Source of the DNA: Macrostomum lignano
Lineage: Eukaryota
Direction: 5' to 3'
Assembly (NCBI GenBank): GCA_002269645.1
Contig: NIVC01002400.1
Span: forward strand, 56,945-120,944
DNA: 64,000 nt
Below, piece by piece: positions 3,642 to 64,000 of the stretch; the first letter of the stretch is position 1; each line of letters opens with the position of its first letter. The position numbers were made by a program, and so were the translations under genes. The notes below the pieces were generated by a model. That model had not been told where the DNA came from and made no database searches. It saw only the letters and a program-made list of their open reading frames with translations.

Positions 3642-4251
3642 GAGTCACGCCGCAGCCAACAGAAGCTGGGCACCGCTTCCCGTCTGGCCAATCTGATCCC
3701 GGATCCAACCGAAGATCTGGAAGAGTTCGTGCTTCGACCGGCACCTCAGGGTTGCGTAATCAAAGGCCGCATCACTCGAGACACGCGGGGCATCGAGCGG
3801 ACCCGCTACCCGACTTACTACCTGCACATGGAACGCGATGATGGCAAGAAAATCTTTCTGCTGGCCGCTAGGAAACGCCGCCACTCGTCCACCGCGAACT
3901 ACCTGATCTCCTGCGACCCGACAGATCTGAAACGTGCCGGCGAAAGTTTCGTTGGCAAATTGCGCGGCAATTTTTTTGGCACTGGTTTCACCGTGTTTGA
4001 CAACGGCGAGGCGCCTAAGAAAAGCGGCGAGTTGGCGCGTAGAGAGTTGACGGCGATCGCCTACGAGACCAACGTGCTGGGGTTCCGGGGCCCGAGGAAG
4101 ATGACCGTCCTGTTGCCGGGCATGAACGCTGATTCGGAGAGGATCGAACTCCGTCCGAAGTCGGACGATGACGGCCTGCTGGCCAGGTACAAGAGAAAGG
4201 AAATGAACAACTTGCTAGAGTTGCACAATAAAACTCCTGTCTGGAATGAAG
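3642..4251 (+). CDS. tub: Tubby-family gene, exon encoding most of the Tubby C-terminal domain
   Basis: Acceptor ccccaccttag|GAG, donor GAAG|gtaagt. Translation [13 protein letters not shown]...[25 protein letters not shown]...[11 protein letters not shown]...[18 protein letters not shown]...[16 protein letters not shown]...[10 protein letters not shown] matches TUB/TULP. Confidence 0.95.
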
Positions 4252-4339
4252 GTAAGTGCGACTCTCTACAATACTGTCAATTCACTGCATCGAGAATATT
4301 TTTGCCACCTCTATTTACAGTGCCTATATAAGTCACTCT

Positions 4340-5037
4340 GTCTGCAGTATCACAGAGTCAATGTCACTCTGTCTATACAGTATCACAGAATCAATGTCAC
4401 TCTGTCTATACAGTATCACAGAATCAATGTCACTCTGTCTATACAGTATCACAGAGTCAATGTCACTCTGTCTATACAGTATCACAGAGTCAATGTCACT
4501 CTGTCTATACAGTATCACAGAGTCAATGTCACTCTGTCTATACAGTATCACAGAGTCAATGTCACTCTGTCTATACAGTATCACAGAGTCAATGTCACTC
4601 TGTCTATACAGTATCACAGAGTCAATGTCACTCTGTCTATACAGTATCACAGAGTCAATGTCACTCTGTCTATACAGTATCACAGAGTCAATGTCACTCT
4701 GTCTATACAGTATCACAGAGTCAATGTCACTCTGTCTATACAGTATCACAGAGTCAATGTCACTCTGTGTATACAGTATCACAGAGTCAATGTCACTCTG
4801 TCTATACAGTATCACAGAGTCAATGTCACTCTGTCTATACAGTATCACAGAGTCAATGTCACTCTGTCTATACAGTATCACAGAGTCAATGTCACTCTGT
4901 CTATACAGTATCACAGAGTCAATGTCACTCTGTCTATACAGTATCACAGAGTCAATGTCACTCTGTCTATACAGTATCACAGAGTCAATGTCACTCTGTC
5001 TATACAGTATCACAGAGTCAATGTCACTCTGTCTATA
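4340..5037. repeat. Intronic minisatellite, 33-bp unit, about 21 copies, each with an internal inverted repeat
   Basis: Unit cagtatcacagagtcaatgtcactctgtctata. acagagt and actctgt are reverse complements. Confidence 0.95.
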
Positions 5038-5119
5038 AGTACATGTAGCCCTAACAACTCCTTCATTGCCATTTAAAACTTAGAAAAACCTTTCGCAAAA
5101 CATCTCGATCTATTCATAG

Positions 5120-5422: not shown

Positions 5423-6849
5423 TGCAGATCTGCAGCTGCTCTGATGGAGTCTGACAGGCTGTTGGTTGTCTTTGTAACACAGTTTTATTGCTTACTGAGT
5501 CTTTGTTTCATTTTATAATTGTTGTTGTAATTTATACTGCGTATATAGCTAGTGTGCAGTTAATGTGCAGTCAAACACACTCACACACACACACACACTT
5601 GGATATCTGGTTTTAATCACCTATAGATACATATTACACTTATACTCGTAAATTATATATAAATTTTCAGTCAGTGAATTTATAGAACAGAAGAGCAGAT
5701 TTGAGCTAATAATGGATTTTTTAGTTTCTTGTATTTTTGCTGTTTTTCAGTCTGAAGTTATTGTAAGCCGTCCAAATGTTTTTTTGATATAACTATTTTT
5801 TTCTGGTATCGCACAATAAAAACCAAGTTTTAAACTTTTTTAAACAATATTTCTAACTTTACACATTACTCATATGTAGTATCATGTGATAAAGTTTTCT
5901 TTTCCGTACCAAACACAATACCCGTCCGATTTTTACTTATATAACACTTTATTCACACCGTCCGTTGTTGAAAAGTATTTAATTCTGTGTTTACAAACGC
6001 AAATGTTTGTTTTATTTTAGACACAATTCAAATATTTTAAGATATGCTATCCAGTCCTGCTATTATAAAAAAAAGTAAAAATTTACCTGTTAATAAATTT
6101 ATTTATTTTTATTTATTTTATTTTAACTCTTAAAGACCTAAATAACTACGAGTAAAATTCACGAATAAAAATATACCTACTCGTTAAAAGAGTTGCATTA
6201 TTTTCTTAAAATTTCTATTCTTTTTGAAATAAATTACCTAACAAAACTGCAGGAGTTTACTATTGAGCCTTGGTTAACATTCTTATTGTGAATTTTTGAA
6301 ATATATATGATGCAAATATTGAAATGATTTTTTTCTCTGTTCTGGAGACTCCGTTGTTTAGTCCAAGACGATCTACTCCAGATAGAATAATTTGTCTCTG
6401 TCAGTATATGGTAGATTGACGATCTTATTTTAAATCATGTACTCCTGTTTTTCTGTCTTTGATCTCATTTTACTTATTTCTGCATATTTATTTCTGATTC
6501 CTATCAGATGCGCTGCTTACCTACTTGCGAGTAGTTGATATAAAATAGTTAGGAACGCTCTCTTGCTGCACAAACTTGTTATTGCTATTTTAAACATGCA
6601 TGTTTTGTCTATGCGCCAAACTTTCTTTCATTGACAAAGATTCAAATTGGTAATTCGTTTGTTTAATAGCGGAAAAGAAGAAAAATCTTATTGAAAGACA
6701 CTGCACATTGCTAAAATATATCTTATCAAATAATCGCGATTAGTTTTTCGTCTCTTGCTTCACCGCTTATGACACAAAATGGGTACCCATGTGAAATGAG
6801 TTGATGTTTGACTCTTTTAATTCATTGATAATGGCCGGGGTGCCACATG

Positions 6850-14105: not shown

Positions 14106-14693
14106 ATGCCGCTAGTTCATTGCCACCATCTCAATCCTTGCTTTCCTCATCGAGTGGTACGACAAATGTCCCTTAGAGACCGACGACTGTACGTGTTCTT
14201 CCACGTGTGCCTGTGGACTGGCGTCCTCTCGTTCGCAATCGGCACAGCTCTCTACGTCGCGACGAGAACCTACGTGTTCTTCATCATGGCCCTACCCTGC
14301 GTGTGCGTGATGTTTGTTGGCCAGTTCGGTTTCCGCTGGTTGGCGCTCAAAAATGAGGACAAATTCGATGTGTACTATCCAAACGACGCGTCCCTACAGG
14401 TAGGCGGCGACTTCAACCGACTCCAGCAGCTGAACCAGGGACTTGCGCCAGTGGCGCCGCCGCCTCCAGCCTACACGGAGACGTACGACGGGCCGATTTT
14501 TACCATAGACGGTAGCCTCGCCCCGCCGCCGAGCTACGAAGCTACTGCGGGCGGTCAATCGAACACTGTTCAACAAGTCAACAAGGAAGCTATCGAGCTG
14601 CAGAGTCGAGACGCTTCTGCTGCACATGTAAGCGGATCTGCAGCTACTTCTGGTGCAGGAGAGCAGCAGCAGCAACTGCGAATAGGGGTCTAA
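14106..14693 (+). CDS. Single-exon membrane protein with 2 TM helices and a cytoplasmic tail containing PPAY and PPSY motifs (start may be the Met at 14167)
   Basis: 195-aa GC-rich ORF. Hydrophobic segments YVFFHVCLWTGVLSFAIGTALYVA and YVFFIMALPCVCVMFVGQFGF, plus PPPPAY and PPPSY. Confidence 0.8.
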   Translation: MPLVHCHHLNPCFPHRVVRQMSLRDRRLYVFFHVCLWTGVLSFAIGTALYVATRTYVFFIMALPCVCVMFVGQFGFRWLALKNEDKFDVYYPNDASLQVGGDFNRLQQLNQGLAPVAPPPPAYTETYDGPIFTIDGSLAPPPSYEATAGGQSNTVQQVNKEAIELQSRDASAAHVSGSAATSGAGEQQQQLRIGV

Positions 14694-15334
14694 TGATTCA
14701 GGGAAGAATTATTCTGGTACATAAATAGTTCGATCGCTCGAGAGATGCTCATAAACTGGTATTTGCACGTTCTTCAGATTTTTTATTGCATAATTCGTCT
14801 GTTAATTAATATGTTTTTTTGAAGCTATTTATCTATAGTATAATTAAACTTTGTTCGCATCCGGTTTAACATTTCCAGTACCAGAAAATTGTTTCCGATG
14901 TAAATTCAAGTGAGAAAAACAACTAATGTGCATGCCTGTTGACAGACGGTAAAACATCCACCTCACCCCCACGTTTATGTAATTTTTTGTAAAAAGAGTA
15001 CATCTGTATGTACATCTTTCAGCATGTATTTATGTAGCGTCAAGGTGTTTAGCGCACAGTAAACCAGCTTATTTTCATGTAAAACGCATCGATGTCCAAT
15101 CGATTACCAATTGAACGCATGCTAATCATATTTGAAGACACCAGTTCGCATAACCTTATTGCACAGTCAGGATGCTTATAAATTTACCTTCGTGATCAAC
15201 TTTCATTGAAAGTACCAGACAGTAAGAAACAAAAAAATATAATGCTTTTTATGTAAATTATCGACCAAATTATGTAATTATTATCATCGATTTAAATCTA
15301 AGGAACTTTGATGTTAGAATTATTTATTTTGTCT

Positions 15335-16895
15335 GTCTCTTTATGGGTACCCTGTCTCTTTATGGGTACCCCTGTCTCTTTATGGGTACCCTGTCTCTTT
15401 ATGGGCGCCCCTGTCTCTTTATGGGCGCCCCTGTCTCTTTATGGGCGCCCCTGTCTCTTTATGGGTACCCTGTCTCTTTATGCGTACCCCTGTCTCTTTA
15501 TGGGTACCCTGTCTCTTTATGGGCGCCCCTGTCTCTTTATGGGTACCCTGTCTCTTTATGGGTACCCTGTCTCTTTATGGGTACCCCTGTCTCTTTATGG
15601 GTACCCTGTCTCTTTATGGGCGCCCCTGTCTCTTTATGGGTACCCTGTCTCTTTATGCGTACCCCTGTCTCTTTATGGGTACCCTGTCTCTTTATGCGTA
15701 CCCCTGTCTCTTTATGGGTACCCCTGTCTCTTTATGGGTACCCTGTCTCTTTATGGGTACCCCTGTCTCTTTATGGGTACCCTGTCTCTTTATGGGCGCT
15801 TCTGTCTCTTGGTGGGCGCCCTGTCTCTTTATGGGTACCCCTGTCTCTTTATGGGTACCCTGTCTCTTTATGGGCGCTTCTGTCTCTTGGTGAGCGCCCC
15901 TGTCTCTTTATGGGTACCCTGTCTCTTTATGGGTACCCCTGTCTCTTATGGGTACCCTGTCTCTTTATGGGCGCTTCTGTCTCTTGGTGATCGCCCCTGT
16001 CTCTTTATGGGTACCCTGTCTCTTTATGGGTACCCCTGTCTCTTTATGGGTACCCTGTCTCTTTATGGGCGCTTCTGTCTCTTGGTGGGCGCCCTGTCTC
16101 TTTATGGGTACCCCTGTCTCTTTATGGGTACCCTGTCTCTTTATGGGCGCTTCTGTCTCTTGGTGAGCGCCCCTGTCTCTTTATGGGTACCCTGTCTCTT
16201 TATGGGTACCCCTGTCTCTTATGGGTACCCTGTCTCTTTATGGGCACCCCTGTCTCTTTATGGGTACCCTGTCTCTTTATGCGTACCCCTGTCTCTTTAT
16301 GGGTACCCTGTCTCTTTATGCGTACCCCTGTCTCTTTATGGGTACCCCTGTCTCTTTATGGGTACCCTGTCTCTTTATGGGTACCCCTGTCTCTTTATGG
16401 GTACCCTGTCTCTTTATGGGCGCTTCTGTCTCTTGGTGGGCGCCCTGTCTCTTTATGGGTACCCCTGTCTCTTTATGGGTACCCTGTCTCTTTATGGGCG
16501 CTTCTGTCTCTTGGTGAGCGCCCCTGTCTCTTTATGGGTACCCTGTCTCTTTATGGGTACCCCTGTCTCTTATGGGTACCCTGTCTCTTTATGGGCGCTT
16601 CTGTCTCTTGGTGATCGCCCCTGTCTCTTTATGGGTACCCTGTCTCTTTATGGGTACCCCTGTCTCTTTATGGGTACCCTGTCTCTTTATGGGCGCTTCT
16701 GTCTCTTGGTGGGCGCCCTGTCTCTTTATGGGTACCCCTGTCTCTTTATGGGTACCCTGTCTCTTTATGGGCGCTTCTGTCTCTTGGTGAGCGCCCCTGT
16801 CTCTTTATGGGTACCCTGTCTCTTTATGGGTACCCCTGTCTCTTATGGGTACCCTGTCTCTTTATGGGCACCCCTGTCTCTTTATGGACGCCCCT
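15335..16895. repeat. Minisatellite, 19/20-bp unit (ccctgtctctttatgggta), with a 624-bp higher-order duplication
   Basis: Tandem units. Identical ORF translations at 15948 and 16572. Confidence 0.95.
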
Positions 16896-16948
16896 GTCTT
16901 TTTGGTGGGCGTTACTTTTCCAGCCTCGTAGGTCGGTAGATGCCGAGT

Positions 16949-17083
16949 CCAAGGGGTGACAAAAGTTAAGCTTTTCTGTCATTTATCAAGGTTTGTTGCC
17001 CTTTTCATTTAGTTTTTTTTTGAGGAGTTCAACTTACTTTTGTGAAGACCTTTTGGGGAGGGGTCTGCCCCTGTCCCCCTTGG
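16949..17083. mobile_element. Possible small MITE remnant
   Basis: ccaaggggtgaca and tgtcccccttgg are near-inverted ends. No clear TSD. Confidence 0.3.
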
Positions 17084-17211
17084 GATGGATATAGATGGAT
17101 ATAGACAGGCATGTATATAGAAGTTTTGTGAAAAGTTTATGGCTTTGATTTCTTAATATAATTACAATATAGCTACTCATATTTCTAATCAGGATCTTAA
17201 AGTTCGTGGTC

Positions 17212-17238
17212 ATGAAACTTTGTCTTACTTGCACTCTC
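17212..17238 (+). CDS. Candidate neuropeptide precursor, putative exon 1 (start of the signal peptide)
   Basis: Acceptor tttctaatcag| at 17192, then ATG AAA CTT TGT CTT ACT TGC ACT CTC|gtaaaa (MKLCLTCTL, phase 0). Confidence 0.35.
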
Positions 17239-17479
17239 GTAAAACGCATACGATTGTCCCTCAAGATTACAGTGCATTTATGGGAACTGAGGGCTTTTGT
17301 AATCAGCATTTAATTTCCTTCGTTTAATTAGCAGTTAAGGATTAACTTTACGATCGCGCAACAGTTCTCAATGCAGATTATAAATGAAAATGTGCTGAGC
17401 ATTACTTTCTAATAGCTTCATTATATAATTCTACCGAGAATGGGTACTTTCATCATAAGCAAAGATAGTTAGATAAGAG

Positions 17480-18915
17480 CGCCACCTGTACAGTATAGGT
17501 ATAACCTGTTAGATTTGAGAATAACTGTTGGATATGAGCGTTACCTGTTAGGTGAGGAGGTCACCTGTTAGAAAAGGGTCTCATCTGTTAGATGAGAAGG
17601 TCATCTTTTAGATAAAGTCATCACCTGTTAGATAATGTTGTTATTTTTTAGATATGAAAATAACCTGTTACATAAGGTTATCAATTGTTAGATAAGGGTG
17701 TCCCCCTTGTCCTCCTTATTTGTTAGACAAAGTCTTTACCTGTTTGATAAAGTTGTTACCTGATAGATATGGGTAGAGCTTGTTAGATAAGGGCGTCACC
17801 TGTTAGATATTGCTGCCACCTGTTAGATATTGCTGTCACCTGTTAGATATTGCTGTCACCTGTTAGATAAAGATGTTATCTGTTAGATAAGGGTGTCACC
17901 TGTTAGATGGAGAAGGTCATCTGTTAGTTAAAGGTATCATCTGTTAGATAAAGTCTTCACCAGTTAGATATGGGTATAACAAAAAATATAAGGGCGCCAC
18001 CTGTTAGATAAGGGTGTTATCTGTTAAATAATTTTGTTACCTGTTAGATAAGGGTGTCACTTGTTAGATAAAGTCGTGACCTGCTAGATACGGGTAAAAC
18101 TTGTTAGATAAGTGTGTTATCTGTTAGATATGGGTGTCACTTGTTAGATAAAGTCGTGACCTGCTAGACATGGGTAAAACTTGTTAGATAAGTGTGTTAT
18201 CTGTTAGATATGGGTAAAACTTATTAGATAAGTGTGTTATCTGTTAGATAAGGGTGTCACCTGTTAGATGGAGAAGGTCATCTGTTAGTTAAAGGTATCA
18301 TCTGTTAGATAAAGTCTTCACCAGTTAGATATGGGTATAACAAAAAATATAAGGGCGCCACCTGTTAGATAAGGGTGTTATCTGTTAAATAATTTTGTTA
18401 CCTGTTAGATAAGGGTGTCACTTGTTAGATAAAGTCGTGACCTGCTAGATACGGGTAAAACTTGTTAGATAAGTGTGTTATCTGTTAGATACGGGTAAAA
18501 CTTGTTAGATAAGTGTGTTATCTGTTAGATATGGGTGTCACTTGTTAGATAAAGTCGTGACCTGCTAGACATGGGTAAAACTTGTTAGATAAGTGTGTTA
18601 TCTGTTAGATATGGGTAAAACTTGTTAGATAAGTGTGTTATCTGTTAGATATGGGTAAAACTTGTTAGATAAGTGTGTTATCTGTTAGATACGGGTAAAA
18701 CTTGTTAGATAAGTGTGTTATCTGTTAGATATGGGTGTCACTTGTTAGATAAAGTCGTGACCTGCTAGACATAGGTAAAACTTGTTAGATAAGTGTGTTA
18801 TCTGTTAGATATGGGTAAAACTTGTTAGATAAGTGTGTTATCTGTTAGATATGGGTAAAACTTGTTAGATAAGTGTGTTATCTGTTAGATATGGGTGTCA
18901 CCTGTTAGATAAGTA
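17480..18915. repeat. Diverged 20-21-bp array built on ctgttagata, with a ~361-bp higher-order copy
   Basis: Recurrent (c)tgttagata. The block at 17880 recurs at 18241. Confidence 0.9.
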
Positions 18916-19358
18916 TGTCCCGATGTATATTGGAATGTTACATGTTAGGTAGGCCTTGATGCAGCTCAGCAAGCATTCTACAGAGGAGTGTTACATGACT
19001 TGGATAACTATAGGGACCAGGACGAGTGCTTCACCATCAGCACATTGGACAAGGACACGTCAGAAGCGCCGCTCTCCCTCCTGAACCAATCAGCAGCTGA
19101 CTGGATTGGCACACCAACATCCTGTTTGACCGGCAGTTTCTCATTGCTTGAACAATATTAATAAATTCGTCCTCTTCAACTTTGGCGCGTAGCTTCTCTG
19201 CCGGGATATTTCCAAATTCAGATATCAAAAAAATATTTAAAAGAATATCATCAAATTTTCGAGCATAAAATGTCGAAGTACGCTCTACTGCCAGTTTTCT
19301 GCTCTTTGGGTGAGTTGCGAAAAATAGATTTAAAAAAGGAATCGAACCTATGATATAG

Positions 19359-19471
19359 TTGGTAAACTTCATTTCAGTTATTGTGCTGGCTGTGATGGAC
19401 CTGGTCACTGCATTGCCTGCATCGCAGGAGGAACTGGACAAACGATCTGGGCATGAGGAGGCCGACGGAAG
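19359..19471 (+). CDS. Candidate neuropeptide precursor, exon 2 (alternative acceptor at 19378)
   Basis: LVNFISVIVLAVMDLVTA-LPASQEELDKRSGHEEADG(R). Acceptors gatatag| and catttcag|, donor AG|gtctgt (phase 2). Confidence 0.55.
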
Positions 19472-19669
19472 GTCTGTTTTGTTGACTCTTCTGTTTACCA
19501 TACAGGTATCTATCAATCAGTTAAACCTTACCTTGAAGAATGACAGTCTATTGGGTTTACCAGAGTCACTGCGGTTGTGACAGTCTACCATGATATTTGT
19601 CTCATTTTTCGCATTTTAGTGCTTAAGTCTCGACACTATAGAGTCTTGTGGCTGTAGTGGTATCTGAAT

Positions 19670-21350
19670 TAGTGTCTGACTTAGTGCCTGACTTAGTGCC
19701 TGACTCAGTGTCTGACTTAGTGCCTGACTTAGTGCCTGACTTAGTGTCTGACTTAGTGCCTGACTTAGTGCCTGACTTAGCGTCTGACTTAGTGCCTGAC
19801 TTAGTGCCTGACTTAGTGCCTGACTTAGTGCCTGACTTAGTGCCTGACTTAGTGCCTGACTTAGTGCCTGACTTAGTGCCTGACTTAGTGCCTGACTTAG
19901 TGTCTGACTTAGTGCCTGACTTAGTGCCTGACTTAGTGCCTGACTTAGTGCCTGACTTAGTGCCTGACTTAGTGCCTGACTTAGTGTCTGACTTAGTGCC
20001 TGACTTAGTGCCTGACTTAGTGCCTGACTTAGTGCCTGACTTAGTGCCTGACTTAGTGCCTGACTTAGTGCCTGACTTAGTGCCTGACTTAGTGCCTGAC
20101 TTAGTGCCTGACTTAGTGCCTGACTTAGTGTCTGACTTAGTGCCTGACTTAGTGCCTGACTTAGTGCCTGACTTAGTGTCTGTCTTAGTGCCTGACTTAG
20201 TGCCTGACTTAGTGCCTGACTTAGTGCCTGACTTAGTGTCTGTCTTAGTGTCTGACTTAGTGCCTGACTTAGTGCCTGACTTAATGTCTGACTTAGTGTC
20301 TGACTTAGTGTCTGACTTAGTGCCTGACTTAGTGCCTGACTTAGTGCCTGACTTAGTGCCTGACTTAGTGCCTGACTTAGTGTCTGTCTTAGTGTCTGAC
20401 TTAGTGCCTGACTTAGTGCCTGACTTAATGTCTGACTTAGTGTCTGACTTAGTGTCTGACTTAGTGCCTGACTTAGTGCCTGACTTAGTGCCTGACTTAG
20501 TGCCTGTCTTAGTGCCTGACTTAGTGCCTGACTTAGTGCCTGACTTAGTGCCTGACTTAGTGCCTGACTTAGTGCCTGACTTAGTGTCTGACTTAGTGTC
20601 TGACTTAGTGCCTGACTTAGTGCCTGACTCAGTGTCTGACTTAGTGCCTGACTTAGTGCCTGACTTAGTGTCTGACTTAGTGCCTGACTTAGTGCCTGAC
20701 TTAGCGTCTGACTTAGTGCCTGACTTAGTGCCTGACTTAGTGCCTGACTTAGTGCCTGACTTAGTGCCTGACTTAGTGCCTGACTTAGTGCCTGACTTAG
20801 TGCCTGACTTAGTGCCTGACTTAGTGTCTGACTTAGTGCCTGACTTAGTGCCTGACTTAGTGCCTGACTTAGTGTCTGTCTTAGTGCCTGACTTAGTGCC
20901 TGACTTAGTGCCTGACTTAGTGCCTGACTTAGTGTCTGTCTTAGTGTCTGACTTAGTGCCTGACTTAGTGCCTGACTTAATGTCTGACTTAGTGTCTTAC
21001 TTAGTGTCTGACTTAGTGCCTGACTTAGTGCCTGACTTAGTGCCTGACTTAGTGCCTGACTTAGTGCCTGACTTAGTGCCTGACTTAGTGCCTGACTTAG
21101 TGCCTGACTTAGTGCCTGACTTAGTGCCTGACTTAGTGCCTGACTTAGTGCCTGACTTAGTGCCTGACTTAGCGTCTGACTTAGTGCCTGACTTAGTGCC
21201 TGACTTAGTGCCTGACTTAGTGTCTGACTTAGTGCCTGACTTAGTGTCTGACTTAGTGTCTGACTTAGTGACTTCGTGTCCGTCTTAAGTGCCTGTCTTA
21301 GTGCCTGTCTTAGTGCCTGTCTTAGTGTCTGTCTAAGTGCCTGACTTAGT
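19670..21350. repeat. 12-bp minisatellite (gacttagtgcct)n, about 140 copies
   Basis: Tandem 12-mers with cct/tct variants. Confidence 0.97.
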
Positions 21351-21369
21351 GTTTAGTAAGTTTGCAGCA

Positions 21370-21576
21370 TTTGGGTAAGCTAACAGTCAGGCTCATTCCG
21401 CTAACCCCTGAGCACGCAGGCGCACGCAGACAAGAACGCGCAGGTACACGCTTGCACAGGATGTACAGCCGCCCAGACTTTCTCTCACCGTCTCGGGGGG
21501 GGGGTTGAGTTTTTTTGCTCTCGCACAGAAAGGAATGTGGCCGCGCAGGAATCGAACCTTCAACCGCTAAGCTACC
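21370..21576 (-). mobile_element. tRNA-derived SINE-like element with collapsed A/B-box spacing
   Basis: The minus strand reads ggTAGCTTAGCGGttgaaGGTTCGATTCCtgcgcggcca, followed by a GC-rich body. Confidence 0.5.
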
Positions 21577-23154
21577 CGTATAACTGTTTATTTTTCTCTA
21601 TTTCTGCATCGCTTGAAGCAGTTACCAGCAAAGTATCAGGGAATCCATTTATTTTCATTCTTGGGGCCCCACCCACGCAGCATCTATAGACCTGCTCAGG
21701 TATTAATGGCTTTCTGCATCAGGGCACCAGGAGAACAATGCCACTCCACATACAGAAATTCAACTCGCATCAGCTTCATAAAACAGCATGAAATTTATTA
21801 TTTTCCCATTCTGCAGAAATCGCTTTCCCTACAGCGAATGGCGGAACACTCGCCACAATAAAACCGCCGCCCCAATCAAATAACAAAAAAAAACATATTG
21901 AAAAGTTTTCTTTTTGAGTCTTTTAACTTTTTTTGAGTAAACTGGCTTTACGTGCTGTGTAGATGGCGTGACAGTATTGAGAGGCAGTAGCCATTGAATC
22001 TTTGCATGAACAGCTTCAGGCTATTATAGCCCATAGTGGCCTGCGCAGAGTTTAAGCGGCTTACTGCCCACCCGGATTCCAACGCAGCAGCTGTCGATAC
22101 GACAGTGATGTCGAAAGGAAAAAACCGATAGAGAGGGAGAGAACAGACCAGCAGAAGCAACAAGCCAAGCAACTCAGTAGAGACAAAGGATAATTTATTA
22201 ATGAGTAAGCTGCTTCAGCTGACAGGATCTAGCGCTTCAGCTTCTAGGTGATTGATTGGAGCTCCCAGCTGTTGGACTGCGAGGGATTTCTCTCTATTGA
22301 AATTGAAATGCATTGGTTGGCTGGATAGTTTGTCTCTTGCCTCCAACACCAACTGACTTGTCTCACATTGGTGTCCCTTTTGAGCTATAAAAGCTCTGGT
22401 TTTGAAAAAGATTTAGATGATGGCTGTTGTGTAGGGTTATAGCTATAGTTCCATTGTCGTGCTGTCACTTGAAATGGAAACACGGTCGATGCTTAGGGCC
22501 TTCTCTGAGATACAACGTCTGTTTTTTAAATTGCTAATCAATTTAACACAAGATTTAGAAGCATTTTCTCTGAGTGGCATTCACCTGCGTGTTGCAACTT
22601 CTTAAAGAGATATTTACCACATGGTAAACCCACATTATAGGCATTCATTTAGATCATAGCCAATAAAGTCAATCAAGTAAATAATACAATTAAAAATCAG
22701 CATAAAGGGTAAAAATGAAGGTCTGTAGCCAAGATAACTGGGTTTGAAATACTCTACTAGATTGTCTTTAAAGCAGAGAGCAGAGCCTTGCAGTCTGCGT
22801 CAGCTTGACTGGCTTAATTGTCTATGGCCGAGACCTGTTCTGTGGTAGTGGCTGCTGTTTTGTTTTAATCAAATGAAAGTGTCTATGGTTGAAATGGGAG
22901 CCCCCACACCCCCAGCACCCCCTCCCCCCCGACTTTTCCCCGGTCTTTTGTTCTTTCTCTCAGTCTATGTCTATGGCACAATAACAGTAATTATACCCAT
23001 GCTTCAAGGGGTGTAAATGGGAAATCAGAGGGCGACGTAAAAAGACAGCCAAGTTGACAGTTCGGCCACATAGACTCTTTCTCTCTCTCTCTCTTTTTCT
23101 CCAAGTGTTCAAATTAACTACTATTGAATTTTCGAGCTCTTTTCCCGCCTACAG

Positions 23155-23332
23155 AAGATCAGCTGTCAGCAGGCGCGGCTGGCCAGTCCGCTACATGGCT
23201 GGCGGCGGTCTCATGGAGATCAAACGCGCCGCCGATGATGCCACCTTGTCAGCTGAATCGGAGCGCGAGCGGCTGCAACGACGGCTGCAGGAATTCTACG
23301 AAGAGAAATTGCGACGCCTTGGTCAGGAGTGA
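23155..23332 (+). CDS. Candidate neuropeptide precursor, last exon
   Basis: Acceptor ttttcccgcctacag| (phase 2, matching exon 2). Encodes RSAVSRRGWPVRYMAGGGLMEIKRAADDATLSAESERERLQRRLQEFYEEKLRRLGQE*. AATAAA at 23401. Confidence 0.65.
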
Positions 23333-23574
23333 TGCGGACTGCCAGGAGAAATATTTTGAAGCATCCATCAAAGTTAAAAAGGAATTATTAATGTTTTTCT
23401 AATAAATATATTACTGAAGATGTTTAACCGGACATGATGAACTTAAGCAAAGTGAAATACAAAATATATTGAAGCATCCAAAATGAGCAAGCTAACAAGC
23501 AAAAAATTATATACTGCGCTAAATGCTTTCATTGATTTTTATAAATTCTAGCTTACTCCCTACTAACAATGGCA

Positions 23575-26500
23575 AAGACACTCCCATGAGCGTAGACACT
23601 CCCATGAGCATAGACACTCCCATGAGCATAGACACTCCCATGAGCATAGACACTCCCATGAGCATAGACACTCCCATGAGCATAGACACTCCCATGAGCA
23701 TAGACACTCCCATGAGCAAAGACACTCCCATGAGCATAGACACTCCTATGAGCAAAGACACTCCCATGAGCATAGACACTCCCATGAGCAAAGACACTCC
23801 TATGAGCAAAGACACTCCCATGAGCAAAGACACTCCCATGAGCATAGGCACTCCCATGAGCATAGGCACTCCCATGAGCATAGGCACTCCCATGAGCAAA
23901 GACACTCCCATGAGCATAGACACTCATATGAGCAAAGACACTCCTATGAGCATAGACACTCCTATGAGCAAAGACACTCCTATGAGCATAGACACTCCCA
24001 TGAGCAAAGACACTCCCATGAGCAAAGACACTCTTATGAGCATAGGCACTCCCATGAGCATAGGCACTCCCATGAGCATAGACACTCCCATGAGCATAGA
24101 CACTCCCATGAGCATAGACACTCCCATGAGCAAAGACACTCCTATGAGCAAAGACACTCCCATGAGCAAAGACACTCCCATGAGCATAGACACTCCTATG
24201 AGCAAAGACACTCCTATGAGCATAGACACTCCTATGAGCAAAGACACTCCTATGAGCATAGACACTCCCATGAGCAAAGACACTCCCATGAGCAAAGACA
24301 CTCCTATGAGCATAGGCACTCCCATGAGCATAGGCACTCCCATGAGCATAGACACTCCCATGAGCATAGACACTCCTATGAGCAAAGACACTCCTATGAG
24401 CAAAGACACTCCCATGAGCATAGACACTCCTATGAGCAAAGACACTCCCATGAGCATAGACACTCCTATGAGCATAGACACTCCCATGAGCAAAGACACT
24501 CCCATGAGCAAAGACACTCCCATGAGCATAGGCACTCCTATGGGCAAAGACACTCCTATGAGCATAGACACTCCCATGAGCATAGACACTCCTATGAGCA
24601 TAAGCACTCCCATGAGCATAGACACTCCTATGAGCAAAGACACTCGTATCAGCATAGACACTCCCATGAGTAAAGACACTCCTATGAGCAAAGACACTCC
24701 TATGAGCAAAGACACTCCTATGAGCATAGACACTCCCATGAGCATAGGCACTCCCATGAGCATAGGCACTCCCATGAGCATAGACACTCCTATGAGCAAA
24801 GACACTCCTATGAGCAAAGACACTCCCATGAGCATAGACACTCCTATGAGCAAAGACACTCCCATGAGCATAGACACTCCCATGAGCAAAGACACTCCTA
24901 TGAGCAAAGACACTCCCATGAGCAAAGACACTCCCATGAGCATAGGCACTCCCATGAGCATAGACACTCCCATGAGCAAAGACACTCCTATGGGCAAAGA
25001 CACTCCCATGAGCAAAGACACTCCCATGAGCATAGGCACTCCCATGAGCATAGACACTCACATGAGCATAGACACTCCTATGAGCAAAGACACTCCTATG
25101 AGCAAAGACACTCCCATGAGCATAGGCACTCCCATGAGCATAGGCACTCCCATGAGCATAGACACTCCTATGAGCAAAGACACTCCTATGAGCATAGACA
25201 CTCCCATGAGCAAAGACACTCCATGAGCAAAGACACTCCCATGAGTATAGGCACTCCCATGAGCATAGGCACTCCCATGAGCATAGACACTCACATGAGC
25301 ATAGACACTCCTATGAGCAAAGACACTCCTATGAGCAAAGACACTCCCATGAGCATAGACACTCCCATGAGCATAGACACTCCCATGAGCAAAGACACTC
25401 CCATGAGCAAAGACACTCCCATGAGCATAGGCACTCCTATGGGCAAAGACACTCCTATGAGCATAGACACTCCCATGAGCATAGACACTCCTATGAGCAT
25501 AAGCACTCCCATGAGCATAGACACTCTTATGAGCAAAGACACTCCCATGAGCATAGACACTCCTATGAGCAAAGACACTCCCATGAGCATAGACACTCCC
25601 ATGAGCAAAGACACTCCTATGAGCAAAGACACTCCTATGAGCATAGACACTCCCATGAGCATAGGCACTCCCATGAGCATAGACACTTCCATGAGCATAG
25701 ACACTCCTATGAGCAAAGACACTCCTATGAGCATAGACACTCCCATGAGCAAAGACACTCCTATGAGCATAGACACTCCCATGAGCAAAGACACTCCTAT
25801 GAGCATAGACACTCCTATGAGCAAAGACACTCCTATGGGCAAAGACACTCCCATGAGCAAAGACACTCCTATGGGCAAAGACACTCCTATGAGCAAAGAC
25901 ACTCCTATGGGCAAAGACACTCCCATGAGCAAAGACACTCCTATGAGCAAAGACACTCCTATGAGCAAAGACACTCCCATGAGCAAAGACACTCCCATGA
26001 GCATAGACACTCCCATGAGCATAGACACTCCTATGAGCAAAGACACTCCTATGGGCAAAGACACTCCTATGAGCAAAGACACTCCCATGAGCATAGGCAC
26101 TCCCATGAGCATAGGCACTCCCATGAGCATAGGCACTCCCATGAGCAAAGACACTCCTATGAGCATAGACACTCCCATGAGCAATGACACTCCCATGAGC
26201 AAAGACACTCCCATGAGCATAGGCACTCCCATGAGCATAGGCACTCCCATGAGCATAGACACTCACATGAGCATAGACACTCCTATGAGCAAAGACACTC
26301 CTATGAGCAAAGACACTCCCATGAGCATAGACACTCCTATGAGCATAGACACTCCCATGAGCAAAGACACTCCCATGAGCAAAGACACTCCCATGAGCAT
26401 AGGCACTCCTATGGGCAAAGACACTCCTATGAGCATAGACACTCCTATGAGCAAAGACACTCCTATGAGCATAGACACTCCCATGAGCAAAGACACTCCC

Positions 26501-29500
26501 ATGAGCAAAGACACTCCTATGAGCATAGGCACTCCCATGAGCATAGGCACTCCCATGAGCATAGACACTCCCATGAGCATAGACACTCCTATGAGCAAAG
26601 ACACTCCTATGAGCAAAGACACTCCCATGAGCATAGACACTCCTATGAGCAAAGACACTCCCATGAGCATAGACACTCCTATGAGCATAGACACTCCCAT
26701 GAGCAAAGACACTCCCATGAGCAAAGACACTCCCATGAGCATAGGCACTCCTATGGGCAAAGACACTCCTATGAGCATAGACACTCCCATGAGCATAGAC
26801 ACTCCTATGAGCATAAGCACTCCCATGAGCATAGACACTCCTATGAGCAAAGACACTCGTATCAGCATAGACACTCCCATGAGTAAAGACACTCCTATGA
26901 GCAAAGACACTCCTATGAGCAAAGACACTCCTATGAGCATAGACACTCCCATGAGCATAGGCACTCCCATGAGCATAGGCACTCCCATGAGCATAGACAC
27001 TCCTATGAGCAAAGACACTCCTATGAGCAAAGACACTCCCATGAGCATAGACACTCCTATGAGCAAAGACACTCCCATGAGCATAGACACTCCATGAGCA
27101 AAGACACTCCTATGAGCAAAGACACTCCCATGAGCAAAGACACTCCCATGAGCATAGGCACTCCCATGAGCATAGACACTCCCATGAGCAAAGACACTCC
27201 TATGGCAAAGACACTCCCATGAGCAAAGACACTCCCATGAGCATAGGCACTCCCATGAGCATAGGCACTCCCATGAGCATAGACACTCCTATGAGCATAG
27301 ACACTCCCATGAGCAAAGACACTCCCATGAGCATAGACACTCCTATGAGCATAGACACTCCCATGAGCAAAGACACTCCTATGAGCATAGACACTCCCAT
27401 GAGCATAGGCACTCCCATGAGCATAGGCACTCCCATGAGCATAGACACTCCTATGAGCAAAGACACTCCTATGAGCAAAGACACTCCCATGAGCATAGAC
27501 ACTCCTATGAGCAAAGACACTCCCATGAGCATAGACACTCCCATGAGCAAAAACACTCCTATGAGCAAAGACACTCCCATGAGCAAAGACACTCCCATGA
27601 GCATAGACACTCCCATGAGCATAGACACTCCCATGAGCAAAGACACTCCCATGGGCAAAGACACTCCCATGAGCAAAGACACTCCCATGAGCATAGACAC
27701 TCATATGAGCAAAGACACTCCTATGAGCAAAGACACTCCCATGAGCATAGACACTCCTATGAGCAAAGACACTCCCATGAGCATAGACACTCCCATGAGC
27801 AAAGACACTCCTATGAGCAAAGACACTCCCATGAGCATAGACACTTCCATGAGCATAGACACTCCCATGAGCATAGACACTCCTATGAGCAAAGACCCTC
27901 CTATGGGCAAAGACACTCCCATGAGCAAAGACACTCCCATGAGCATAGGCACTCCCATGAGCATAGGCACTCCCATGAGCATAGACACTCCTATGAGCAA
28001 AGACACTCCTATGAGCATAGACACTCCCATGAGCAATGACACTCCCATGAGCAAAGACACTCCCATGAGCATAGGCACTCCCATGAGCATAGGCACTCCC
28101 ATGAGCATAGACACTCACATGAGCATAGACACTCCTATGAGCAAAGACACTCCTATGAGCAAAGACACTCCCATGAGCATAGACACTCCTATGAGCATAG
28201 ACACTCCCATGAGCAAAGACACTCCCATGAGCAAAGACACTCCCATGAGCATAGGCACTCCTATGGGCAAAGACACTCCTATGAGCATAGACACTCCCAT
28301 GAGCATAGACACTCCTATGAGCATAAGCACTCCCATGAGCATAGACACTCTTATGAGCAAAGACACTCCCATGAGCATAGACACTCCTATGAGCAAAGAC
28401 ACTCCCATGAGCATAGACACTCCCATGAGCAAAGACACTCCTATGAGCAAAGACACTCCTATGAGCATAGACACTCCCATGAGCATAGGCACTCCCATGA
28501 GCATAGACACTTCCATGAGCATAGACACTCCTATGAGCAAAGACACTCCTATGGGCAAAGACACTCCCATGAGCAAAGACACTCCTATGAGCATAGACAC
28601 TCCCATGAGCAAAGACACTCCTATGAGCATAGACACTCCTATGAGCAAAGACACTCCTATGGGCAAAGACACTCCCATGAGCAAAGACACTCCTATGGGC
28701 AAAGACACTCCTATGAGCAAAGACACTCCTATGGGCAAAGACACTCCCATGAGCAAAGACACTCCTATGAGCAAAGACACTCCTATGAGCATAGACACTC
28801 CTATGAGCAAAGACACTCCTATGAGCATAGACACTCCCATGAGCAAAGACACTCCCATGAGCAAAGACACTCCTATGAGCATAGACACTCCCATGAGCAT
28901 AGGCACTCCCATGAGCATAGACACTCCCATGAGCATAGACACTCCTATGAGCAAAGACACTCCTATGAGCAAAGACACTCCCATGAGCATAGACACTCCT
29001 ATGAGCAAAGACACTCCCATGAGCATAGACACTCCTATGAGCATAGACACTCCCATGAGCAAAGACACTCCCATGAGCAAAGACACTCCCATGAGCATAG
29101 ACACTCCTATGGGCAAAGACACTCCTATGAGCATAGACACTCCCATGAGCATAGACACTCCTATGAGCATAAGCACTCCCATGAGCATAGACACTCCTAT
29201 GAGCAAAGACACTCGTATCAGCATAGACACTCCCATGAGTAAAGACACTCCTATGAGCAAAGACACTCCTATGAGCAAAGACACTCCTATGAGCATAGAC
29301 ACTCCCATGAGCATAGGCACTCCCATGAGCATAGGCACTCCCATGAGCATAGACACTCCTATGAGCAAAGACACTCCTATGAGCAAAGACACTCCCATGA
29401 GCATAGACACTCCTATGAGCAAAGACACTCCCATGAGCATAGACACTCCCATGAGCAAAGACACTCCTATGAGCAAAGACACTCCCATGAGCAAAGACAC

Positions 29501-32500
29501 TCCCATGAGCATAGGCACTCCCATGAGCATAGACACTCCCATGAGCAAAGACACTCCTATGGGCAAAGACACTCCCATGAGCAAAGACACTCCCATGAGC
29601 ATAGGCACTCCCATGAGCATAGGCACTCCCATGAGCATAGGCACTCTCATGAGCAAAGACACTCCTATGAGCATAGACACTCCCATGAGCAAAGACACTC
29701 CCATGAGCATAGACACTCCTATGAGCATAGACACTCCCATGAGCAAAGACACTCCTATGAGCATAGACACTCCCATGAGCATAGACACTCCCATGAGCAT
29801 AGACACTCCCATGAGCATAGACACTCCTATGAGCAAAGACACTCCTATGAGCAAAGACACTCCCATGAGCATAGACACTCCTATGAGCAAAGACACTCCC
29901 ATGAGCATAGACACTCCCATGAGCAAAAACACTCCTATGAGCAAAGACACTCCCATGAGCAAAGACACTCCCATGAGCATAGACACTCCCATGAGCATAG
30001 ACACTCCCATGAGCAAAGACACTCCCATGGGCAAAGACACTCCCATGAGCAAAGACACTCCCATGAGCATAGACACTCATATGAGCAAAGACACTCCTAT
30101 GAGCAAAGACACTCCCATGAGCATAGACACTCCTATGAGCAAAGACACTCCCATGAGCATAGACACTCCCATGAGCAAAGACACTCCTATGAGCAAAGAC
30201 ACTCCCATGAGCATAGACACTTCCATGAGCATAGACACTCCCATGAGCATAGACACTCCTATGAGCAAAGACCCTCCTATGGGCAAAGACACTCCCATGA
30301 GCAAAGACACTCCCATGAGCATAGGCACTCCCATGAGCATAGGCACTCCCATGAGCATAGACACTCCTATGAGCAAAGACACTCCTATGAGCATAGACAC
30401 TCCCATGAGCAATGACACTCCCATGAGCAAAGACACTCCCATGAGCATAGGCACTCCCATGAGCATAGGCACTCCCATGAGCATAGACACTCACATGAGC
30501 ATAGACACTCCTATGAGCAAAGACACTCCTATGAGCAAAGACACTCCCATGAGCATAGACACTCCTATGAGCATAGACACTCCCATGAGCAAAGACACTC
30601 CCATGAGCAAAGACACTCCCATGAGCATAGGCACTCCTATGGGCAAAGACACTCCTATGAGCATAGACACTCCCATGAGCATAGACACTCCTATGAGCAT
30701 AAGCACTCCCATGAGCATAGACACTCTTATGAGCAAAGACACTCCCATGAGCATAGACACTCCTATGAGCAAAGACACTCCCATGAGCATAGACACTCCC
30801 ATGAGCAAAGACACTCCTATGAGCAAAGACACTCCTATGAGCATAGACACTCCCATGAGCATAGACACTCCATGAGCATAGACACTCCATGAGCATAGAC
30901 ACTCCTATGAGCAAAGACACTCCTATGGCAAAGACACTCCCATGAGCAAAGACACTCCTATGAGCAAAGACACTCCTATGAGCAAAGACACTCCTATGAG
31001 CAAAGACACTCCTATGAGCAAAGACACTCCTATGAGCAAAGACACTCCCATGAGCAAAGACACTCCTATGAGCAAAGACACTCCTATGAGCAAAGACACT
31101 CCTATGAGCAAAGACACTCCATGAGCAAAGACACTCCTATGAGCAAAGACACTCCTATGAGCAAAGACACTCCCATGAGCAAAGACACTCCCATGAGCAT
31201 AGACACTCCCATGAGCATAGACACTCCTATGAGCAAAGACACTCCTATGGGCAAAGACACTCCTATGAGCAAGACACTCCCATGAGCATAGACACTCCCA
31301 TGAGCATAGGCACTCCCATGAGCATAGGCACTCCCATGAGCAAGACACTCCTATGAGCATAGACACTCCATGAGCAAGACACTCCTATGAGCAAAGACAC
31401 TCCCATGAGCATAGACACTCCCATGAGCATAGACACTCCCATGAGCATAGACACTCCATGAGCATAGACACTCCCATGAGCAAAGACACTCCTATGAGCA
31501 TAAGACACTCCCATGAGCATAGACACTCCTATGAGCATAGACACTCCCATGAGCATAGACACTCCTATGAGCAAAGACACTCCCATGAGCATAGACACTC
31601 CTATGAGCAAAGACACTCCTATGAGCATAGACACTCCTATGAGCATAGACACTCCTATGAGCATAGACACTCCCATGAGCATAGACACTCTATGAGCATA
31701 GACACTCCCATGAGCATAGACACTCCTATGAGCAAAGACACTCTATGAGCAAGACACTCCTATGAGCATAGACACTCCCATGAGCATAGACACTCCCATG
31801 AGCATAGACACTCCATGAGCATAGACACTCCTATGAGCAAAGACACTCCTATGGGCAAAGACACTCCCATGAGCAAAGACACTCCTATGGGCAAAGACAC
31901 TCCTATGAGCAAAGACACTCCTATGAGCAAAGACACTCCCATATGAGCAAAGACACTCCTATGAGCATAGACACTCCTATGAGCATAGACACTCCCATGA
32001 GCATAAGCACTCCCATGAGCATAGACACTCCCATGAGCATAGACACTCCCATGAGCATAAGACACTCCTATGAGCATAGACACTCCCATGAGCATAGACA
32101 CTCCCATGAGCATAAGCACTCCCATGAGCATAGACACTCCCATGAGCAAAGACACTCCCATGAGCAAAGACACTCCCATGAGCAAAGACACTCCCATGAG
32201 CAAAGACACTCCTATGGGCAAAGACACTCCCATGAGCAAAGACACTCCTATGGGCAAAGACACTCCTATGAGCAAAGACACTCCTATGGGCAAAGACACT
32301 CCCATGAGCAAAGACACTCCTATGGGCAAAGACACTCCTATGAGCAAAGACACTCCTATGGGCAAAGACACTCCCATGAGCAAAGACACTCCTATGAGCA
32401 AAGACACTCCTATGAGCAAAGACACTCCCATGAGCATAGACACTCCTATGAGCAAAGACACTCGTATGAGCATAGACACTCCTATGAGCAAAGACACTCG

Positions 32501-32850
32501 TATGAGCATAGACACTCCTATGAGCAAAGACACTCCCATGAGCAAAGACACTCGTATGAGCATAGACACTCCCATGAGCAAAGACACTCCTATGAGCAAA
32601 GACACTCCTATGGGCAAAGACACTCCCATGAGCAAAGACACTCCTATGGGCAAAGACACTCCTATGAGCATAAGCACTCCCATGAGCATAGACACTCCTA
32701 TGAGCAAAGACACTCCCATGAGCATAGACACTCCTATGAGCAAAGACACTCCTATGAGCATAGACACTCCTATGAGCAAAGACACTCCTATGAGCATAGA
32801 CACTCCCATGAGCATAGACACTCCCATGAGCAAAGACACTCCCATGAGCA
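23575..32850. repeat. 9.3-kb 18-bp satellite (gacactcc[c/t]atgagca[t/a]a), about 515 units, with higher-order duplications
   Basis: Tandem 18-mers. Identical variant order at 27701 and 30077 (offset 2376 = 132 units). Confidence 0.98.
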
Positions 32851-33436
32851 TAGAAGACTGCCATGATGGCACTCCATAAGCAAAGGCACTCCAGCAATGA
32901 CACTTACATGACGACTATGGCACTTCAAAAATGCCCTATGAAACTGCCCTCTCATTATGGAGCAAGGTTGCAAAATATTTAAATTTACTCGTACATTCGT
33001 CTACTCATTTCAAATAAAAAAGGTCATTTGTAGATCTCTTTTTTATCGATTTTTCTTCACCAGTTTCACGCGCCGAATTTCAATTATTCTTGCAGCGCGT
33101 CGAAGGAATACAAATTACATTTATGTACATGCCGCATGTAGTTCAGCATTACTATGTAAATAATTACTGATTTGTTGTCGAATAAACTGATGGGGTGTAA
33201 AGCCAATTGCCTACAGCAGCAAACTGAAATTAACACTGATCAATAAGCTGACTAAGTCCTATACGCCATTCGCCCGTCAAGCTGTCAATGAGAGTTTTCT
33301 ACGAAACAGTAAGTTAGGTCAGAACTCGTGCTCGTAGCTTAAGGCTGGGACCTTCTCACGTATACCTATTTGCGAACAGCTCAACAAGGCTCGTTCTCAG
33401 TTTTTGAATTTGTCTAGTTATGTCATTCATCCTTTT

Positions 33437-38736: not shown

Positions 38737-38989
38737 TAGAAACAAAACTAGCAATCTAGTGCGGCCCCCCTTCGGGGCGCCCAATAAGAAAGGAGCAAAA
38801 ATAGTTCATGGAAAACAATAAAAAAACACATTTTCTTAAACACTAATTCCTTCTTCACATTTTAAAAATCACCTTATTCGTGTAAAATTGTCACGGACTA
38901 AGATGTTTGCAAAATTAAAAAATCACTTTTTCTCTAAAATTAACAAACAGTCAACAAAATATCGTTTCACTAAATAGAAAATATTCCCA

Positions 38990-52747: not shown

Positions 52748-53240
52748 ACGGCTCTGACCAACGGAGCCGGAGGTCAGGCCGGTGACGCACCTCAGTCGCA
52801 GCAGCAGCCCGCAGGCCCAGGCGTGCCGGGGTTCTGGCTGACGGCGCTCAAGAACGTCGACCTGCTGAGCCAGATGATTCGCGATCAAGACGAGCCGATA
52901 CTGCGCCACCTGACCGACATCAAGGTGATCACGTTCAGCGGAGAGCAGAACGGTTTCGTATTGGAGTTTCATTTCTCGCCAAACGAATACTTCTCTAATA
53001 GTATGCTTACTAAGCATTATTATTTGAGAATGGTGCCGGATCCTGAGCACCCGTGGGACTATGAAGGCCCCGAAATTGTTCGCTGCAGCGGCTGCGAGAT
53101 CCTGTGGAAGGCTGGCAAAAATGCCACGGTTAAAGTGGTGCGCAAAGTGCAGAAGCACCGGGGCAGCGGGCAGAAGCGAACTGTCACGAAGACTGTTGAG
53201 GCTGATTCGTTCTTCAACTTCTTCAATCCGCCAACGCAGG
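52748..53240 (+). CDS. nap1: NAP1 exon (core NAP domain)
   Basis: GVPGFWLTALKN...DEPILRHLTDIKV...FVLEFHFSPNEYFSNSMLTKHY...GCEILWKAGKNATVK...SFFNFFNPP. Acceptor cctcgccag|, donor G|gtgagt. Confidence 0.95.
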
Positions 53241-53282
53241 GTGAGTGGCTTATTGGCTTGTTTTACTATTAGATTGTAGGTT

Positions 53283-61316: not shown

Positions 61317-64000
<2,684 letters not shown>

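Follow-up and report, generated by a model that had tools for sequence, protein, structure and literature searches.

A candidate neuropeptide or peptide hormone precursor gene among satellite arrays in the flatworm Macrostomum lignano

Whether a short spliced gene lying among satellite arrays in the genome of Macrostomum lignano encodes a neuropeptide precursor is the question raised by a 64,000-nucleotide stretch of DNA, hereafter the window, to which all positions refer. The window constitutes the final 64 kb of the 120,944-base scaffold NIVC01002400.1 of assembly Mlig_3_7 (GCA_002269645.1), with positions 9177-33332 corresponding to scaffold positions 66121-90276 at 100% identity over 24,156 bases. 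A preliminary description of the window had proposed a hidden three-exon prohormone gene with a product of ~106 amino acids (aa); its supposition that the DNA comes from a flatworm proved right. The locus is the M. lignano gene BOX15_Mlig002456g1, deposited as PAA58213.1 and termed a "hypothetical protein" in GenBank. To judge from its sequence, the gene probably encodes a secretory preproprotein of 103 aa, belonging to an orphan family seen so far only in Macrostomum, and it is a candidate precursor of a neuropeptide or peptide hormone.

The coding sequence (CDS) of BOX15_Mlig002456g1 comprises three exons on the forward strand (19270-19309, 19378-19471 and 23155-23332), which together specify the 103-aa product MSKYALLPVFCSLVIVLAVMDLVTALPASQEELDKRSGHEEADGRRSAVSRRGWPVRYMAGGGLMEIKRAADDATLSAESERERLQRRLQEFYEEKLRRLGQE. 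The features of the gene are arranged as follows:

19177-19269, + strand: 5' untranslated region (5'UTR), minimum extent; its frame is open and its translation is the N-terminal extension of PAA58213.1, QLWRVASLPGYFQIQISKKYLKEYHQIFEHK
19270-19309, + strand: coding part of exon 1, 40 nt, reading MSKYALLPVFCSL followed by G and ending in phase 1, with donor GTGAGT at 19310
19310-19377, + strand: intron 1, 68 nt, GTGAGT...TTCATTTCAG; 66 nt in the other two recent copies of the gene
19378-19471, + strand: exon 2, 94 nt, encoding the rest of the predicted signal peptide and an acidic spacer, with acceptor TTCATTTCAG and donor GTCTGT in phase 2
19472-23154, + strand: intron 2, 3683 nt, containing the 12-bp satellite CTGACTTAGTGC
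23155-23332, + strand: coding part of exon 3, 178 nt including TGA, encoding R-SAVS-RR-core-KR and then a charged C-terminal helix
23401-23406, + strand: AATAAA polyadenylation signal, 68 nt 3' of the stop

The corrected product is 100% identical over 103 residues to PAA58213.1, PAA73231.1 (Mlig025753g2) and UniRef entry A0A1I8H4U9, with identity falling to 96% for PAA94507.1 (Mlig025753g1) and A0A1I8HT75; in a word-indexed search, protein matches to the spliced product were found in M. lignano alone. The Mlig_3_7 annotation was derived only from RNA-seq/transcript assemblies and TransDecoder open reading frames (ORFs), its inputs being StringTie/TACO assemblies and a de novo transcriptome together with poly(A) and trans-splicing reads (PMC5730564). 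The junction between the end of exon 2 (19471) and the start of exon 3 (23155), on which the preliminary description had staked its model, is present in this transcript-derived GenBank model, and hence in RNA-seq-based annotation; the match of the spliced product to the deposited transcript-derived proteins places the junction beyond chance. Exon 3 starts at 23155, behind an acceptor with a good polypyrimidine tract (TTTTCCCGCCTACAG). A longer protein that includes exon 3 is conceivable, since the frame is open upstream to 22991, yet the annotated products splice at 23155. The stop codon (TGA at 23330-23332) and the AATAAA signal behind it were correctly recognised in the preliminary description. 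The gene is real, spliced and small, as had been supposed; it is not hidden, however, since a transcript-based annotation exists in GenBank and the protein is also in UniProt.

The 5' end of the earlier model required revision, with the product shortened from ~106 to 103 aa. Exon 1 had been placed at 17212-17238 and spliced to 19359; this is contradicted both by the deposited proteins, all of which read MSKYALLPVFCSL|VIVLAV... across the exon 1/exon 2 boundary, and by the gene structure of a paralogue described below. As the N-terminal extension of PAA58213.1 equals the translation of 19177-19269, the mRNA is colinear with the genome 5' of the ATG, and a splice from 17238 to 19359 is therefore excluded. 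The true exon 1 lies at 19270-19309, while 19359-19377, previously assigned to the 5' part of exon 2, falls inside intron 1. The deposited proteins are labelled 'partial' because the 5'UTR is open in frame, their N-terminal extensions being translated 5'UTR. A minus-strand ORF overlapping exons 1 and 2 (19037-19516) gave no Pfam match and was treated as mechanical. Neither a transfer RNA (tRNA) nor an Rfam family was detected in 17000-23700 by ARAGORN and Rfam searches, and the listed ORFs of intron 2, which were not searched further, showed nothing notable.

Two further near-identical copies of the gene are present on other scaffolds (L001 and L003). The CDSs are intact in all three copies. 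Exons 1 and 2 do not vary among them, and L003 also agrees with the window gene throughout exon 3; in L001, exon 3 carries five nucleotide differences, which alter four amino acids, each located in the C-terminal helix. Intron 2 measures 3683 nt in the window and 3137 and 2514 nt in the other copies, mostly because the satellite copy number varies. Flanks and introns are likewise ~98-99% identical, so the copies are recent and a selection test among them is uninformative. They fit the redundancy already known for the DV1 assembly (PMC5730564). The entries PAA58213.1, PAA94507.1, PAA73231.1, A0A1I8H4U9 and A0A1I8HT75 represent the window gene and these two copies, and carry no function.

A more distant relative was found by a full HMMER search (E 2.8e-7): BOX15_Mlig029116g1/g2, a paralogue of 89 aa (MSKTLCIQLCIVIALAAVCLSRPMKEPAGHMKAEFAEEHHLKRAWPVRYMSGGGLMEIKRSADDDREMFLRRLSELLRRELARNDNDGK) encoded at three loci unlinked to the window gene and deposited as PAA69405.1, PAA75380.1, PAA89667.1 and UniRef A0A1I8JFX4. 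In its reconstructed structure, a 40-nt exon 1 ends in phase 1 at donor GTAAGC, a 79-nt exon 2 ends in phase 2 at donor GTGAGT, and exon 3 has 151 nt. The two genes thus share three exons, a 40-nt exon 1, the intron phases and the position of a core peptide in exon 3; the common exon number, exon-1 length and phases provide independent confirmation of the corrected exon 1. Their proteins share the MSK start, a core that reads KR-AWPVRYMSGGGLMEI-KR in the paralogue, an ADD motif and a C-terminal helix containing RRL. They differ in length (89 against 103 aa), in the N-terminal spacer of the paralogue, which lacks KR and G-RR, and in its C-terminus, which ends ...NDNDGK. Overall identity is ~45%. 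Outside the core, synonymous divergence, expressed as the proportion of differing synonymous sites (pS), is near saturation at 0.74-0.90, and the duplication is therefore old.

The paralogue bears directly on the possibility that the transcript is non-functional and the spliced ORF a product of chance. Such an origin would suit a short frame in a satellite-rich region with no domain and no homologue outside the species, but it does not account for an old, unlinked paralogue that keeps the frame, the intron phases, MSK and the core peptide despite saturated synonymous sites. The intact CDSs of all three recent copies also speak against it, as does the GC content at third codon positions of the gene, which is 0.62-0.78 compared with a GC content of 0.44 in the non-repetitive intron. 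We regard a chance ORF as very improbable.

Conservation between the paralogues is concentrated in one segment of exon 3:

23171-23227, + strand: conserved core, comprising RR (23171-23176), GWPVRYMAGGGLMEI (23177-23221) and KR (23222-23227); putative mature peptide plus the flanking convertase sites

The core follows the consensus RR/KR-[G/A]WPVRYM[A/S]GGGLMEI-KR, with 16/19 residues identical between the paralogues. The 15-mer is bracketed by RR51-52 and KR68-69 in the window protein and by KR and KR in the paralogue; it had been singled out in the preliminary description for homology searches, and this segment, along with the dibasic pair on each side, proved to be the part retained in the old paralogue. 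Non-synonymous divergence (dN) between the two paralogues differs markedly along the protein:

Core, 19 codons: dN 0.07
Signal peptide: dN 0.69
N-terminal spacer: dN 1.11
C-terminal segment: dN 0.61

The peptide is thus conserved while the spacers have diverged (dN 0.07 against 0.61-1.11), in a dN and pS comparison that draws on one paralogue pair. Six dibasic sites and a hydrophobic N-terminal segment are present in the product, as originally reported, though conservation now separates the sites. The two pairs flanking the core are firmly conserved and a third, the RR in the C-terminal helix (LQRRLQE in the window protein, FLRRLSE in the paralogue), is shared, whereas KR35 and G-RR45 have no counterpart in the paralogue. 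KR35 and the first part of G-RR45 belong to the region encoded by exon 2, which specifies the predicted cleavage VTA|LP followed by the acidic spacer LPASQEELD-KR-SGHEEADG-R. An amidated peptide, SGHEEAD-amide, had been predicted from the G-RR; because these sites are absent from the paralogue, it is most likely a spacer rather than a product.

The main rival to the prohormone reading is that the gene encodes a small protein secreted by a non-neuronal gland (e.g. prostate/seminal fluid, adhesive or epidermal), which would remain uncleaved or act via its charged C-terminal helix, the dibasic pairs being incidental. Structure prediction lends it some support: with a four-sequence alignment, AlphaFold2 returned no globular fold (mean predicted local distance difference test score, pLDDT, 64; predicted template modelling score, pTM, 0.29), placing a hydrophobic helix at the N-terminus, disorder at 29-60 and a single helix at 63-102, so that confidently predicted structure (pLDDT ~77-88) is confined to the last 40 residues. 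The ADD...RE..RRL.EL motif of this C-terminus is common to the paralogue, two of the six dibasic sites lie inside the Arg/Glu-rich helix, and two others are the non-conserved ones. In addition, the expression of many lineage-restricted small secreted reproductive proteins is reported from M. lignano (PMC5977470, PMC7336406). By far the best-kept segment is nevertheless the 15-mer with its flanking dibasic pairs, and not the helix (dN 0.07 against 0.61). The gene identifiers are also absent from the searched supplements of a reproduction-related gene study and a germline/neoblast study, which is a weak argument. A gland protein accordingly appears unlikely, while deserving more weight than any of the other alternatives considered.

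Secretion itself is predicted from the N-terminus. Both paralogues begin with MSK, followed by a ~17-residue hydrophobic run with a Kyte-Doolittle maximum of 3.2 in a 9-residue window, and both carry small residues at positions -3 and -1 of a plausible cleavage motif, VTA|L in the window protein and CLS|R in the paralogue. The hydrophobic run is fairly long (23 residues if counted beyond D21), and the sole near-match in Pfam, far below threshold (E 0.1-0.2), is to a transmembrane segment, TMEM132_C, on this same stretch. These features would also fit a type II or signal-anchored small membrane protein with an uncleaved N-terminus and a short luminal or extracellular tail. In both paralogues, however, the positive n-region is short (MSK) and the putative cleavage motif follows directly after the hydrophobic core, and the hydrophobic region has diverged freely (dN 0.69), in the manner of signal peptides. 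A membrane protein is hence considered quite improbable, and the signal-peptide-like N-terminus is retained as part of the prohormone reading.

Searches for known families were carried out with all members and with the exon-3 product. Pfam gave nothing relevant at E<=10, and a PDB profile search recovered only designed or coiled helices. Automatic UniRef names nevertheless suggest hormones, A0A1I8H4U9 being called 'Promotilin' and the paralogue entry A0A1I8JFX4 'Adipokinetic hormone', and it is these names alone that favour a divergent member of the motilin/ghrelin or adipokinetic hormone (AKH) family. The resemblance extends to the general type, as motilin and AKH precursors are likewise small secreted hormone precursors of ~90-140 residues; the hormone position, motifs and Pfam domains of those families are all absent here. 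The hormone of motilin/ghrelin and AKH precursors sits immediately behind the signal peptide; AKH has 8-10 residues, starts with Gln (as pyroglutamate) and has a Trp near its end in the context W-x-x-G-K/R. In the window protein the 15-mer starts 27 residues past the predicted signal cleavage (21 in the paralogue), an AKH motif is missing, and the paralogue continues after its signal peptide with RPMKEPAGH..., which is not AKH-like. Moreover, no motilin, ghrelin or AKH match was obtained in Pfam at E<=10 for any member. Membership of either family is scarcely credible, and the names are treated as automatic labels reflecting the look of a hormone precursor rather than homology. It may be added that the two paralogues bear different hormone names without domain support, which could mislead annotation transfer.

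The prohormone reading can accordingly be set out as a proposed sequence of events, whose secretion, cleavage, expressing cell type and bioactivity we infer. The N-terminal 25 residues would direct co-translational entry into the endoplasmic reticulum and then be removed, probably at VTA|LP in keeping with the -3/-1 rule. In the regulated secretory pathway, a PC2-type prohormone convertase would then cleave at RR51-52 and KR68-69, and a carboxypeptidase would trim the basic residues, so that a single non-amidated peptide of 15 residues, GWPVRYMAGGGLMEI, is set free. The acidic spacer before it and the charged helix behind it would represent propeptide parts, and the 15-mer may act as an extracellular signal, most likely a neuropeptide or peptide hormone. 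The required processing machinery exists, as M. lignano possesses a homologue of PC2, expressed in its nervous system and essential after hatching (PMC4490696). The underlying gene model, transcript support, paralogue, shared gene structure and conservation pattern are observed.

In layout, the protein resembles a classical single-peptide prohormone. Like the prohormones of flatworms and other lophotrochozoans, including the planarian spp/npp set (Collins et al., 2010), it combines a predicted signal peptide with acidic spacers and a short peptide set between KR/RR sites, the peptide being conserved and the spacers drifting; it differs from the planarian prohormones in its lack of a sequence match in their text and supplements and of a Pfam family, and in a peptide that is single-copy and not multi-copy. 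The gene model is already public and the peptide is assignable to no named family. The 15-mer was not found in any neuropeptide catalogue searched, and no paper in the searched literature mentions the peptide strings or gene identifiers. A non-amidated peptide of ~15 residues with a Gly-rich middle recalls pedal peptide/orcokinin, a likeness that we take as a lead only and without claiming membership; the N-terminal xFDxI motif of orcokinins is lacking in the window peptide.

Several observations weigh against a prohormone and temper the confidence placed in it. Homologues outside M. lignano were not found by a word-indexed protein search, a full HMMER search or a two-paralogue profile, among 5.8 billion clustered and 1.84 billion representative proteins (the latter being the set searched with HMMER), in which the transcriptomes of other Macrostomum species are probably mostly not included; for want of such an orthologue, a single paralogue pair carries the conservation argument. 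Within that pair, the core is also low in synonymous divergence (pS 0.30), and codon bias or partial gene conversion, rather than selection on the peptide, could account for some of its conservation. The signal peptide is a heuristic call based on hydropathy and the -3/-1 rule, and RR/KR pairs within an Arg/Glu-rich helix can arise without being cleavage sites. The core peptide would be non-amidated, and it is unlike any known family in Pfam (E<=10) or the planarian catalogue, the text and supplements of which contain no similar motif. The gene identifiers are absent from the searched supplements of four M. lignano expression/genome papers. With respect to amidation, the ...MEI-KR end of the core provides no Gly as a C-terminal amidation signal in either paralogue; amidation is frequent among neuropeptides and not obligatory.

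With these points taken into account, a secretory precursor of a neuropeptide or peptide hormone is still regarded as the probable reading. More tentatively, the two genes might constitute a new, Macrostomorpha-restricted neuropeptide family, in which the non-amidated 15-mer [G/A]WPVRYM[A/S]GGGLMEI would be neuronal, produced by PC2 and active at a receptor.

The satellites among which the gene had been reported to lie flank it and interrupt intron 2:

17543-18919: satellite of 20/40/120 bp, ending ~350 bp 5' of the ATG
19664-21351: 12-bp satellite CTGACTTAGTGC, ~141 copies, inside intron 2
23572-32866: 18-bp satellite GCATAGACACTCCCATGA, 517 copies with 91% matches over 9.3 kb, starting ~170 bp 3' of the poly(A) signal

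The 18-bp array is the cause of a strong GC/AT skew plateau at 24-32 kb and of many long spurious ORFs. Tandem and simple repeats make up ~15% of the M. lignano genome (PMC5730564).

Other short elements were noted near the exons. An imperfect palindrome, CCAATCAGCAGCTGACTGGATTGG, lies at 19086-19109, ~170 bp 5' of the ATG, and consists of two inverted CCAAT boxes around the E-box CAGCTG. This CCAAT/E-box/ATTGG arrangement is identical in the three recent copies and may be a promoter element; as a promoter motif shared by the family it was rejected, being not present upstream of the old paralogue. At one paralogue locus (L004, ~5965-5975), 30 nt 5' of the ATG, the sequence TTTTTTGGCAG|GT resembles a splice acceptor and could serve as a trans-splice acceptor or as the acceptor of a 5'UTR intron, with no equivalent in the window gene. 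Intron 1 (19338-19348) and intron 2 (21548-21558) each contain the motif GGAATCGAACC, which corresponds to a tRNA T-arm in reverse complement; both occurrences may be remnants of a tRNA-derived short interspersed nuclear element, with no tRNA there according to ARAGORN and Rfam.

Elsewhere in the window, the following coding elements were observed:

3729-4331, + strand: exon of the Tub family (tubby-like; E 8e-47), running into a tandem repeat (4246-5076), itself a source of long, artefactual ORFs in several frames
14106-14693, + strand: annotated 195-aa gene containing hydrophobic segments and a pair of PPxY-like motifs (PPPPAY and PPPSY), for which no Pfam family was found; a satellite of 39/273 bp (15333-16903) lies just 3' of it
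36730-38739, + strand: uninterrupted ORF of 669 aa with a reverse-transcriptase domain (RVT_1, E 2e-31), probably a fairly young copy of a retrotransposon lacking long terminal repeats (non-LTR)
52823-53272, + strand: nucleosome assembly protein exon (NAP, E 5e-58)
61317-62522 and 62935-63723, + strand: ionotropic glutamate receptor gene represented by two large exons (ANF_receptor, Lig_chan-Glu_bd, Lig_chan) and running toward the scaffold end, where it is probably cut off

A NAP gene is also found downstream of gene copy L003 (L003 21167-23593), so the duplicated block keeps its gene order over tens of kb, with intervening satellites that differ in length.

The locus poses no challenge to current understanding. 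It illustrates that short prohormone genes split by satellite-bearing introns are caught by transcript-based annotation yet left "hypothetical", and that the UniRef hormone names attached to such proteins are not to be read as homology. M. lignano is a transgenic flatworm model whose peptide signalling is barely catalogued, and an orphan family of two genes whose peptide is sharply conserved and bracketed by dibasic sites offers a cheap and well-defined candidate which, if the proposed function is true, would give flatworm neurobiology a lineage-specific peptide.

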